From contig JAIVFI010000016.1 of assembly GCA_025558095.1 (NCBI GenBank), positions 620,001 to 684,000 on the forward strand: 64,000 nt of DNA, read 5' to 3'. The notes under the pieces are model-generated. The model had not been told where the DNA came from. It did not search any database and was given only the letters and a program-made list of their open reading frames with translations. This document shows, in pieces, positions 47,188 to 50,999 of the stretch (positions within the stretch are counted from its first letter, which is position 1; every line of letters begins with the position of its first letter). A program made the position numbers and the translations under genes. The DNA is from Hyaloraphidium curvatum SAG 235-1. Lineage: Eukaryota; Fungi; Monoblepharomycota.

Positions 47188-48521
47188 TCACAGCCGCTCG
47201 TTCCCGCCCGCCCCGCGGAGCCACCGCCTGAACCACGATACGCACTTTTCGGTCATGTCCGGCGTGACCTCGTGGCCCGCCGGGAACACCGCAAGCTCGA
47301 ACGCGTCCTCGTTGAAGTAGAGGAAGTCGTACGCCTCCTTGGTCCTCGCCACGGTATCAAAGGGAGGCTGTTGGGAAAGGATCAGCCCATTTCTCGCCAG
47401 CAGTAGCCGGCGAACCCACCCGTCCGTCGATTCCCGCGATCGGATTCCTCGGATCCCGCTCCCCGTTGATCGCGCAGCACGCCCTGGGAGCCAAGCTGGG
47501 CACGGTCCTCTGCGCGTCCCACTTGTCGAGGAGACCGGGCGCGATCCGGTCGTACGTCCGGCGGACGACGTCGGCGGTGATTTCGGTGCCGGCTTCCTGG
47601 GCGGCGAGGGTGAACGGAGGGAGGATGGTGTCGATCCGGGGGCGGTAGTACTCGGGCGACTTGAGGGAGAAGGTGAAGGACTGGAGGCCGATCTGTGAGG
47701 TGCGATGAGAAACGAACTGCAAGGGGAGATGGTCGGGCACCAACGATGGGCACGATGGTCCTGTAGCGCGTGTCGGCCGCCGCGCTGAGCCACGAGATCA
47801 TTCCGCCAAGGCTGATCCCCGTGATCCCGAGCTTGAGATGGTCCATTTCACGCCGGGGATCGTCCGAGGGCAGCGAAGCACGGTCCTCGCCCACGCAGGA
47901 TATCCAGTCGGCGACTTTGTGGCAGTCCCACACCGAGTCAAGGAGGAATGGCTGGCAGGATCCCGGCTCGCGCCAGGCCCGGGCCAGGGCGGCATGGTAG
48001 ATCCTAAGAACGTCGGCCCGGACCTGGGCGTCCGTGCGCGCGTCCGGGCCCGGGAGGGTCTCGATGCCGATGCCTGGCTCGGAGGACACGGCCCGTTCGC
48101 CGTGGTAACGGGCGTCGATCGTGACACAGCAGAAACCGTCGCCGACGAGGCGCACTGCGAGGTTCTTGACCGCCTCTTGCCCCGAGCCGGTGAAGTGAAT
48201 GACGAGGATTGTCGGCAGCGGCTTCCCGGCCTCCTTGGGACGCAGCACCGTGAGCGGCACCTTGCCGTTGTCGCTGCCGAGCTCGGTGGTGAGCACGAAC
48301 GAGTCGACGCGCAGCCCGGCGGCGGCGGGCAGCTTTGCCAGCGCGGCGGCGACCCGCGGCGGCACTGCCCCGCGGCGCGTCACCGGCAGCGGCGAGGGAG
48401 GCAGCTGTGGTGGCAAGCGAGGACTCAAACTCCGGACCGCATTGCTCGCCCAGGAACCGCGACTCACCTGCTTCCGCGAGCGTCGGAGGAAGTCCTGGAA
48501 CTCGGAGGCCACGTCCGCCAT
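47188..48521 (-). CDS. Alpha/beta hydrolase (multi-exon)
   Basis: IDARYHGER, GITGISLGGM nucleophile elbow, NGERDPRN, GHEVT. Confidence 0.9.
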
Positions 48522-48872
48522 TCTGCACGTCGGAGTCGCTTCTCGGCACGAAGTGGAGCCGGTGAGTCAAGTGCTTCGGGGATCGCCACTGTTTACGCCG
48601 CGCGTCGATCATCATCCTCGTCTGTCGCCCAGCGCAGCTTCCTCATTCTTTCCGCTCACGGCCTCGTCACTGCGGACAAGCACCGCACCACCGACTTCAG
48701 CGAATCCGAATGGCTCGCCATTATCCCGTCTGCGCCCCAGGGTGCCACGGGCGCGGTCTTCCGCGGCGACGACGGGGAGCCGTTCCGTGCTCCGCTGGAC
48801 CGCGCGACGCTGCTCCGCGAAGTCGGCCGCCGCAGCCGTTTGCTGCTGTTCGAGGCCCGCGTGCACTTCTAC

Positions 48873-50186
48873 ATGGCTCCGTGGGCCTCGAGGCCCGTGA
48901 TCAGGAGCCTTCTCTTTACCGTCTCGGGAATGGTCGTTGTGTTCTCACCCCTAGCGTTTGAGGGCGGCCTATACGCGTCGCCTCAGCTGGCAGCCGGATT
49001 TTTCGGCTCCCTGGTGGTAGTTGCAATGTCACCTGCAATCTTCTTGTTTGCTTCATTTGCACGCCTGTACACGTACTTCGCGCCGGCGAAAGGCAAGACC
49101 GGTGCCGGTCAATCAGCCTCCATTCCGGAACCCGATTACAGCCCACATGCGCTGGCGGGGCTCGCCCGGTGGTCGCAGCTAGTCGATGAACAAGATTCCG
49201 CTGCGAAACGGGACGCAGAGTCCGTCGCGGCCATCGGCACCCCCTCTCTGCTCCTCCAACACCAGCAGGGCGATTCACTTTGCCCCTGTGTGGCGCCCGC
49301 CTGCACTGGTTCCCTCCTTCGGAGCGCTCCCCTGCTGGGCTTCCTCGAAGCTGTCACACGAATGACTGTCACTTCTGCTGGCTTCGTTCTGGCCCTGTCG
49401 AATCCTCTGCTTGTGCACGGCGGCGCGTTTTGGGCCTCTTGGTGGGCCGTTTCAGGAGCCTTGGCCCTGTTGGCGCTCCTGAACTATGTACCCGTCAACG
49501 TGATGGGTCGCTTTACCACCAACGCCTCCTTGCTCCGCCTTTCCCTCCGGATCCAGCGCCGGGCGATGTTCGTGGCCCTCCGCGACTTCATCGATTCTTT
49601 CGACCGGGCCATCTTTGGAGGGGAGGCGAGCACCGAGCTTCCGGACGCACGACTCTACCCCAAGCTCCACTACAGGCTGGCGGATACCTGGGAGAAGCGC
49701 GTCCCTTTCCTAGTTTCGGGCCGCCTTTTCCTTGGCCTGGTATCCATAACGTTCGCCTTACCCACCGTGGTCAACCTCGCCGTCGGATCCTGCATCCCGG
49801 CCTACTCGGTCGTCCTTCTCGTCTTGTTGCTGGTTGTCACGATCACGGACCTCACCCACGTCGCCCTCTCCAACGAGCAGATCGAAAAGATCACGGAGCT
49901 GTACCGGCAGGCCCAGACCGGGATCCGGGACAAGCTCGTGCGCGCGCGTCGTCTGCCCCCGGACCCGGCCCGCGCGCCGCTGCTGGAGGCGCTGCGGGAG
50001 CACGACCGGCTGCTCGAGTCGTTCAGGGAGGTCGCGGGGTTCCGCGGCCGGTTCCTGGGGTTCGTCGTGGATTTCGGCGTGCTGCGGACCTTCCTGGTGA
50101 CCGTGTTCACGCTGCTCGTCGGGTTGTGGTCCATCCTGCGCGGATCGATCGTCTTCACGCTCGACTCTGTGTGCCCAAGTAGATGA
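48873..50186 (+). CDS. Seven-TM membrane protein, candidate GRL/7TMIC (gustatory-receptor-like) family; frame is open upstream of this first in-frame ATG
   Basis: Seven hydrophobic segments, long loops, C-terminal GFVVDFGVLRTFLVTVFTLLVGLW. Confidence 0.7.
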   Translation: MAPWASRPVIRSLLFTVSGMVVVFSPLAFEGGLYASPQLAAGFFGSLVVVAMSPAIFLFASFARLYTYFAPAKGKTGAGQSASIPEPDYSPHALAGLARWSQLVDEQDSAAKRDAESVAAIGTPSLLLQHQQGDSLCPCVAPACTGSLLRSAPLLGFLEAVTRMTVTSAGFVLALSNPLLVHGGAFWASWWAVSGALALLALLNYVPVNVMGRFTTNASLLRLSLRIQRRAMFVALRDFIDSFDRAIFGGEASTELPDARLYPKLHYRLADTWEKRVPFLVSGRLFLGLVSITFALPTVVNLAVGSCIPAYSVVLLVLLLVVTITDLTHVALSNEQIEKITELYRQAQTGIRDKLVRARRLPPDPARAPLLEALREHDRLLESFREVAGFRGRFLGFVVDFGVLRTFLVTVFTLLVGLWSILRGSIVFTLDSVCPSR

Positions 50187-50432
50187 GGTGAATGAGGTTG
50201 GCTTTCATCACGGATCTTGGTGCCTCGAACACTTTGCCGTACGCCTGCACGGGCTGGGAAAGAGGACCAGGTCTGTATTCGAAGTCTAGAGTAACGAATA
50301 GCGAACAATCGGTGCGTCGAAGAGCTTGCTGCAGGATTCGGAGCCGATTGTTTACATGCGCGTCTCCCCGGCGACTACGAACTAACCAACGCGTCGCTCT
50401 GTGTCTCTGCCCTCTCGTTGCGCCTTCTTGTC

Positions 50433-50999
50433 ATGGGATTCTTCCATAGTCTCTGGCTCCGGCCCGCGGACGCAGAACAGGACGCGTTGCTGTCGCGGAT
50501 CATCGAATACGAGAGTCACAGCAAGCCGGGCACTTCGCACCCGTTCACGCCGCACGCGACCCTCTTTTCGCTGGACGCGGGGCAGGATGCCGGCACGGAG
50601 GAGGTGGTGGCTCGGCTCGAGGCGGCAGTCGCTTCGTGGGCCGCGTCCGGGGGGCGGGCGAGGGGCAAACCGTTGGTGCTCACCTCGGCTGGCGCGGAAA
50701 CTGGGAAGCACTTTTTCCAGTGCGTGCTCCTGCGAATCGAACCCTCCGAGGACCTGCTCGCGCTGCGCAAGAGCGCGTGTGACGCGTTCCCGCCTGCTCC
50801 GGACACGTACTTTCCGCACATTTCGCTCGTCTACGGGGACCTGCCCGATGACGTGAGGGAGGGGATCGTCAAGGAAGTGGCACAAAGGTGGAGCAACAAG
50901 GTGACGGGCGAGATCCCGTGCGACCGCGTGGAGATTTGGAAGTGCACCACGGAGAAGACGACGCTCGGATGGGTCAAGGTCGGCGAGGTACGCCTCTAG
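50433..50999 (+). CDS. 2',3'-cyclic nucleotide phosphodiesterase (2H CPDase, CPD1-like)
   Basis: SLWLRP, FTPHATL, YFPHISLVY (two HxT/S motifs), HFFQCV. Confidence 0.92.
   Translation: MGFFHSLWLRPADAEQDALLSRIIEYESHSKPGTSHPFTPHATLFSLDAGQDAGTEEVVARLEAAVASWAASGGRARGKPLVLTSAGAETGKHFFQCVLLRIEPSEDLLALRKSACDAFPPAPDTYFPHISLVYGDLPDDVREGIVKEVAQRWSNKVTGEIPCDRVEIWKCTTEKTTLGWVKVGEVRL

Follow-up and report, generated by a model that had tools for sequence, protein, structure and literature searches.

The odorant (OR) and gustatory (GR) receptors of insects, and Orco, are channels with the 7TMIC fold, for which the described characteristics include a length of about 350–500 amino acids (Benton 2020, PMC7746228) and inner loops that are longer than the outer ones (PMC7746228, PMC9998090). 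A conserved pore and anchor, combined with variable pocket helices, has been described both in insect ORs and across 7TMICs as a whole (Himmel et al. preprint, 10.1101/2023.08.30.555482), and the documented GR motif in the seventh transmembrane helix (TM7) is TYhhhhhQF (PMC9998090). Plant DUF3537 families (PF12056) have 4–12 members per genome, while 7TMICs outside animals and plants occur as single genes or very small families, such as the six in Thecamonas, none of them with a known function (PMC7746228). Candidate 7TMICs of the Chytridiomycota were found through sequence similarity to GRL/DUF3537, and are represented by the single-copy GRL1 of Spizellomyces punctatus and S. palustris, with one GRL per species (Benton et al. 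2020, PMC7746228); a later structural screen had unspecified 7TMIC hits in Chytridiomycota and Blastocladiomycota, which were counted as 'Fungi' (10.1101/2023.08.30.555482). The PHTF-like Class-B 7TMICs have a sparse, wide taxonomic spread and are distinguished by a lengthened first intracellular loop, IL1 (PMC9998090; 10.1101/2023.08.30.555482). Here we describe a locus in a window of 64,000 nucleotides from the fungus Hyaloraphidium curvatum SAG 235-1 (assembly GCA_025558095.1, contig JAIVFI010000016.1, positions 620,001 to 684,000), where an uninterrupted plus-strand frame of 515 codons at window positions 48639–50186, with its TGA at 50184–50186, quite probably encodes a ligand-gated channel subunit belonging to a new and hugely expanded family with the 7TMIC fold. 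Full-text literature searches returned no paper linking Hyaloraphidium to gustatory receptors, ion channels or 7TMICs.

The frame is intronless and homologous from end to end to family paralogues of about 500 amino acids. The original prediction, made from the letters of the window alone, had correctly recognized an open frame and had placed its start at 48640, one base off, since the translation from 48640 is riddled with stops and the codons begin at 48639. All of the hydrophobic segments that it quoted are present in the translation of the 48639 frame, while the protein terminus that it gave as '...LWSIL' is followed by 12 more residues, including the nearly invariant Cys512. Because the G+C content of the region is 61–70%, long open frames are cheap here and are no evidence by themselves; on its upstream side this frame continues without a stop over 267 further codons, to 47838 and antisense to an alpha/beta-hydrolase gene, which shows the ease with which frames stay open in this region, and the upstream extension (47838–48638) has no homology to the receptor family. 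The paralogues confirm that the 515-codon frame is real and far beyond chance. A six-frame search of the 31.9-Mb assembly that contains the window gave 749 first-look candidates and 88 matches, corresponding to at least 84 loci on 34 contigs, most of them single, intronless open frames of about 500 codons. From 60 retrieved loci we obtained 34 full-length frames, with paralogues of 486–538 amino acids, and built one alignment of 35 sequences and a second of 107 sequences, which are about 25% identical to the first one in it. When 1.84 billion representative proteins were searched with a profile of the smaller alignment, 467 matched at E≤1e-3, 300 of them at E≤1e-30.

All of the relatives that could be named came from the same organism. 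A word-index protein search returned only H. curvatum proteins, namely the public model of this locus and five paralogues, of which four are clear and one is distant, and a search using an alignment in place of the single sequence returned the same six. Ten profile matches sampled across the top 150 were all H. curvatum 'hypothetical proteins', bringing the named matches in both protein searches to 16 of 16 from this fungus, and bearing out the suggestion that the family is lineage-specific and lacks useful annotation. A scan of metagenomes seeded with a six-sequence alignment yielded 185 pattern matches and no relative, which is weak evidence of absence. Within the genome, a 30-base DNA pattern for the signature H-x3-D-x2-C-P-C had 312 sites compared to 2 for the reversed control, and the proline of this signature is only 79% conserved, indicating a family of roughly 400 intronless copies encoding proteins of about 500 amino acids, so far seen only in H. 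curvatum. Family members are biased toward contig ends, with 67% of them lying within 150 kb of an end compared to 46% expected, a value that was not reached in any of 5000 simulations (84 loci, 34 contigs). Tandem pairs also occur among the family loci, for example at C39:391478-395087, C19:88527-93529 and C12:710339-714439. Ratios of nonsynonymous to synonymous substitution (dN/dS) were 0.2–0.5 among paralogue pairs, with dS partly saturated, indicating purifying but fairly relaxed selection.

The fold was assessed by comparison of predicted structures. With the 35-sequence alignment, template-free AlphaFold2 modelling predicted the structure of the window protein with confidence (pLDDT 88.8, pTM 0.88), and with the 107-sequence alignment it did so equally well for P0140, a paralogue that is only 24% identical (pLDDT 88.1). 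Both models have the same order of elements. Two short helices precede TM1, which a 6-residue loop connects to TM2; a long loop follows, with a helix of its own that is well modelled, and then come TM3, TM4 with a long helix behind it on the cytoplasmic side, a helix leading into TM5, a 4-residue turn between TM5 and TM6, a 49-residue TM6, and a seventh helix divided into TM7a and TM7b by a non-helical linker. We aligned the models to each of 48,161 representative chains with VIA-align, an unbiased search in which the window protein scored 12.3 against AaegOR10 (352 of 375 residues aligned), 11.7 against MhOR5, 11.6 against AgamOR28 and 11.1 against ApisOR5, followed by Gr43a (9.0), BmGr9 (8.8), Orco (8.8) and Gr64a (7.6); the other rows were partial helical hairpins of 80–190 residues, mostly matching the cytoplasmic helices. 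With the P0140 model, the top eight of the 48,161 chains were exactly the eight OR, Orco and GR representatives. A Foldseek search of the PDB returned chains of Gr43a, BmGr9, AgamOR28 and OR5-Orco as the only rows of high probability (0.87–0.99). Insect OR/GR/Orco channels supplied the leading matches in three structure searches, and the fold is theirs, as had been foreseen. Neither a fold of G protein-coupled receptors (GPCRs) or transporters, nor an extracellular N-terminus, nor a lack of similarity to Orco and GRs was found, and these were the outcomes named beforehand as counting against the idea. Two further results are leads only or merely suggestive: the neighbours of the protein in a protein language model were ciliate clusters, Tmp39 (0.93) and DUF3537 (0.88, rank 25), with low recognition, and the best row of a shape search in the ESM Atlas was a mostly arthropod cluster (TM-scores 0.46/0.52).

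The topology of the models agrees with that described for 7TMICs. TM1 (residues 86–107) and TM2 (114–136), with the short outer loop between them, occupy positions 48894–49046 and are variable in the family; IL1 (residues 137–219, positions 49047–49295) includes a confidently modelled helix at 173–194, and is followed by TM3 (220–252), the second extracellular loop (EL2, 253–268) and TM4 (269–289) at 49296–49505. The cytoplasmic extension after TM4 (49524–49721) consists of helix 296–326, in which Arg304, Arg308 and Ala309 are conserved, and of helix 339–351 running into TM5 (342–360 in the P0140 model), and is a putative part of the anchor. TM5 (362–383), a 4-residue outer loop containing Cys385, and TM6 follow at 49722–49946; TM6 is a single helix of residues 388–436, of which 388–410 are the membrane part, and enters the cytoplasm (Asn412, 99% conserved). 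TM7a is a cytoplasmic helix (446–463, positions 49974–50027) with conserved His455 and Leu459, the linker at 50028–50072 carries Gly474 (97%), and TM7b (479–503) lies at 50073–50147; the corresponding helices of P0140 are 448–467 and 480–503. A 19-residue Kyte-Doolittle scan identified six hydrophobic blocks, with TM3 below the 1.5 cut-off, and thus agreed with AlphaFold2 for six of the seven helices. Lysine and arginine were concentrated in the inner segments of 35 paralogues (means of 8.5 in the N-terminus, 7.4 in IL1, 9.9 in IL2 and 8.9 in IL3) and were scarce in the outer ones (0.6 in EL1, 0.3 in EL2, 0.1 in EL3 and 0.5 in the C-terminal tail), which by the positive-inside rule places the N-terminus inside and the C-terminus outside. 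Mean loop lengths were 70, 74 and 66 residues for IL1, IL2 and IL3, compared to 6, 16 and 4 residues for EL1, EL2 and EL3. These computational results uphold the expectation of seven transmembrane helices, an inside N-terminus, TM4 and TM6 with long extensions, and a TM7 in two parts, and together with the loop asymmetry they are features shared with 7TMICs. The protein, at 515 codons (437 from the first in-frame methionine), and its paralogues are as long as the longest proteins in the 7TMIC range, or slightly longer.

Conservation within the family followed the same architecture. Column entropy in the 107-sequence alignment had its minimum in TM7b (1.75 bits) and the linker between TM7a and TM7b and its maximum in the membrane parts of TM1–6 (2.8–3.0 bits), with the TM4 and TM6 extensions in between. 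TM7b carries a stripe of small and polar residues, Thr484, Thr488 (79%), Thr491 (97%), Gly495 and Ser498, flanked by Arg483 and Arg501; the 4-3-4-3 spacing of these residues places them on one helical face, which may be the face that lines a pore. At the boundary of IL1 and TM3 (49260–49304) is the motif His208-x3-Asp212-x2-Cys215-Pro-Cys217-x4-Cys222, in which the histidine and the three cysteines are 100% conserved and Asp212 95% conserved among sequences of about 25% identity. Because this motif ends an IL1 of 70–83 residues, it is cytoplasmic by the predicted topology, and it is a candidate structural or regulatory metal (Zn) site. A conserved cytoplasmic N-terminal motif, F-x-x-x-E-W-L-A-x-x-P, is located at residues 20–30 (48696–48728; Pro30 99%), and the outer C-terminal tail (50148–50183) contains Cys512-Pro513 (97% and 82%). 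Cys385 of EL3 (99%) and Cys512 of the tail are both extracellular, and short strands at 385–387 and 505–507, present in both models, probably pair; a Cys385–Cys512 disulfide that ties the tail to EL3 is therefore likely.

The locus is transcribed. In a public run (X1) it is present as an 8,850-nt contig that lacks four short genomic segments, all with canonical splice sites, and which is therefore RNA-derived. Three of the missing segments (47368–47419, 47693–47744 and 48405–48467) are bounded by CT..AC and are minus-strand introns of the hydrolase gene, while the fourth (50312–50449) is bounded by GT..AG on the plus strand; since this junction is just downstream of the receptor frame, plus-strand transcripts run out of the frame at its 3' end. 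Between 48468 and 50310 the contig follows the genome without a break, and it spans the whole receptor frame, which accordingly has neither an intron nor an upstream coding exon. A candidate 5' intron, from GTGAGT at 48562 to CAG at 48636–48638, that might have supplied an upstream ATG was rejected, because of this collinearity and because 48468–48561 contains no ATG.

Several observations suggest that this particular copy may no longer work. Most full-length paralogues have an ATG about 2–30 codons upstream of the conserved N-terminal motif, and in a DNA alignment the position at which the close paralogues L002 and L004 have their start ATG is occupied by ACT (Thr11, 48669–48671). The original prediction had noted neither this loss nor the size of the family. 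The first in-frame ATG is that of Met79 (48873–48875), just before TM1, and an out-of-frame ATG at 48710 precedes it. Among the ten closest paralogues, four are intact and six (L005, L006 and L008–L011) have frameshifts, internal deletions or N-terminal truncations, which indicates that this clade is partly decaying, and which points to birth-and-death turnover in the subfamily or to assembly errors. One could therefore argue that the family is real and that this copy is a young pseudogene, which lost its start so recently that its frame has stayed intact in a GC-rich, stop-poor genome and from which no full-length receptor is translated. The lack of an upstream spliced exon in the RNA contig and the continuation of the open frame opposite the hydrolase gene are consistent with this explanation. 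However, the copy has retained every invariant and nearly invariant residue of the family, conservation over its first 60 residues is similar to that elsewhere in the protein, its dN/dS against intact paralogues (0.29–0.42) is not above that between intact pairs, and the RNA-derived contig covers the locus. Moreover, a non-AUG start, or a start at Met79 giving 437 amino acids with all seven transmembrane helices, would still yield a seven-helix protein. We regard decay as a serious possibility, and yet as the less probable one; this copy has either a non-canonical start or a Met79 start, or it is a very young pseudogene.

Several details of the transcribed region bear on its 5' and 3' ends. 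The out-of-frame ATG at 48710 is the first one downstream of the shared promoter region, and opens an 83-codon frame (48710–48961) that overlaps Met79 and would serve as an upstream open reading frame if the mRNA starts upstream of it. A codon-position GC profile, tried as a way of locating the coding start, was non-discriminating in this genome. At the other end, the GT..AG intron at 50312–50449 sits between the receptor stop and the coding region of a 2H-phosphoesterase (CPDase), and its removal takes away the likely CPDase start ATG at 50433. After this splicing there is no in-frame ATG before the CPDase frame, so that the spliced form is a read-through or 5'-untranslated-region variant, and the coding CPDase mRNA probably begins inside the 'intron'. 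The JGI model for one of the broken paralogues, L005 (P0002), has an arginine-rich N-terminus in the wrong frame.

A second explanation accepts the family and questions its kinship, holding that convergence or generic features account for the likeness to insect receptors and that the family is a lineage-specific seven-helix protein with a cytoplasmic bundle that is not a channel, but a scaffold, a transporter-like protein or a receptor signalling in another way. Several results weigh against our assignment. No Foldseek match to the PDB reached E≤0.001, and E-values were only 0.02–0.15, with TM-scores of 0.23–0.45 and root-mean-square deviations of 5–6 Å. Pfam scans of the window protein, and of 35 family members even at E≤10, gave no relevant match, whether to 7tm_6, 7tm_7 or DUF3537, and a profile search of PDB sequences returned only a spurious 14-bit match to VMA21. 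At the site where the GR motif might be expected, only Thr484 (56%) fits TYhhhhhQF, with a variable residue after it and no Q-F further on; the pattern GF-x-x-D-x-x-x-L-x-T, which the original prediction had presented as a known TM7 signature, describes this sequence and is not a documented 7TMIC motif in the literature consulted. The packing of the anchor and helices, in addition, was judged from secondary structure and aligner output alone. Genome scans with the 7tm_7 and DUF3537 HMMs had no match, but their controls gave none either. The claim of a divergent chemosensory-channel homologue has therefore stood as far as the predicted fold is concerned, and has failed at the level of sequence, where no method linked the family to 7tm_6, 7tm_7 or DUF3537; because the sequence-profile test failed, homology to the 7TMIC superfamily is not proven.

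Convergence is nevertheless unlikely in our judgment. All eight solved 7TMIC representatives came out on top, twice, with near-complete coverage of both target and core; no other superfamily of seven-helix proteins appeared, and the models had been made without templates. The topology, the loop-length asymmetry, the split TM7, the long TM6 and the conservation peak in TM7b also fit together. A GPCR-type receptor or solute transporter, to which seven hydrophobic helices and the LeuT and Nramp chains at similar Foldseek E-values might point, is very improbable, given that those rows had probabilities of about 0.1 and TM-scores of 0.1–0.14, that GPCRs were absent from the top 50 of both unbiased structure searches and have the opposite orientation of the N-terminus, and that transporter matches among the top 50 covered only part of the model.

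If the protein is a channel subunit of the 7TMIC fold, as we favor, we can postulate how it might act. By analogy with the solved insect receptors, the cytoplasmic extensions of TM4–6 and TM7a would form an anchor that brings the subunits together, probably in tetramers; the conserved TM7b, with its stripe of threonine, glycine and serine, would line a central cation pore; and the highly variable bundle of TM1–6 would form a ligand pocket that differs between paralogues, so that the family would constitute a receptor repertoire with ligand-gated channel activity. A four-copy ESMFold2 prediction of residues 269–515, made without an alignment, left the fold of the fragment uncertain and gave no answer about the tetramer, and counts neither way. 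It is also conceivable, and to us possible rather than probable, that in a non-swimming, early-diverging fungus OR-type ligand-gated channels have independently grown into a repertoire of the size known from insects (about 400 genes), in which each channel has a divergent ligand pocket, a pore formed by the conserved TM7b, and a family-specific cytoplasmic His/Cys module that binds Zn and controls gating or assembly. H. curvatum is not known to have a swimming stage, so that a chemoreceptor repertoire would have no obvious use in it, which is a further point against our interpretation.

Some 400 fast-diverging genes in one fungus do display the hallmarks of a receptor repertoire, including variable pocket helices, a conserved pore helix, birth-and-death turnover and tandem pairs. 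Were this interpretation to hold, the odorant-receptor design would have given rise to a large repertoire outside animals. In the literature consulted, no other chemoreceptor-like 7TMIC repertoire there would come near it in size (other non-animal families have 1–12 genes per genome), and it would represent a second, independent case of receptor-repertoire evolution on the 7TMIC fold. The family would also offer hundreds of natural variants with which to test what the fold senses in a microbe, and the depth of their alignment allows structures to be modelled with confidence. In its invariant His/Cys motif on the cytoplasmic side the family has a new element that is concrete and can be tested.

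The receptor gene is effectively unannotated in the public genome. The public model of this locus, DFJ74DRAFT_706977 (394 amino acids, window positions 49506–50999), begins at Met290 of the receptor frame and thus includes only TM5–TM7, and it splices from 50168 to 50481 into the downstream CPDase frame (PF13563, PF07823). The model is a chimera. Its junction, which differs from that in the RNA contig, cuts off the conserved tail with Cys512-Pro. The sampled members of the family, for their part, are all labelled 'hypothetical'. On the other side of the receptor, the alpha/beta-hydrolase gene (47382–48521, minus strand) is divergently transcribed, has weak matches to Peptidase_S15 and ABHD18, and contains three very short introns (52, 52 and 63 nt) confirmed by the RNA contig. 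Its ATG, at 48521, is only about 150 nt from the conserved N-terminal coding sequence of the receptor, and the 5' ends of both genes therefore share a tiny intergenic region.

In comparison with known systems, the H. curvatum family resembles 7TMICs in its conservation pattern, with TM7b and anchor conserved and TM1–6 variable, and it differs from each described group in particular ways. Identity to the insect OR/GR/Orco structures (8v02, 7lic, 8v3c/8v3d, 8z9a, 8jm9, 8vc1) is only 7–12% over the structural alignments, and unlike those receptors the family has neither a 7tm_6 or 7tm_7 match nor the TYhhhhhQF motif; instead it has a long IL1 with an invariant His/Asp/Cys3 motif, a conserved cysteine pair in EL3 and the C-terminal tail, and a conserved N-terminal motif, and its genes are intronless and reside in a fungus without neurons or a swimming stage. 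It shares with Spizellomyces GRL1, compared by description, the seven transmembrane helices, the inside N-terminus and a weak or absent TM7 motif, but GRL1 is single-copy whereas the H. curvatum family has about 400 copies, in whose sequences no similarity to known 7TMICs could be detected. The Class-B protein PHTF, also compared by description, has the same core fold, a lengthened IL1, and structural Z-scores against insect receptors in the same range (11.8–12.9 for PHTF against Orco); however, its IL1 exceeds 300 residues and it has 1–2 copies per genome, compared to a hugely expanded family with an IL1 of about 75 residues carrying the Cys/His motif. Plant DUF3537 is likewise a non-animal 7TMIC family of similar length and is a weak language-model neighbour, but its HMM has no match in the H. 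curvatum family. We file these genes as a new, highly divergent family within the known 7TMIC fold, set apart by its size, its His/Cys motif and its cysteine pair.

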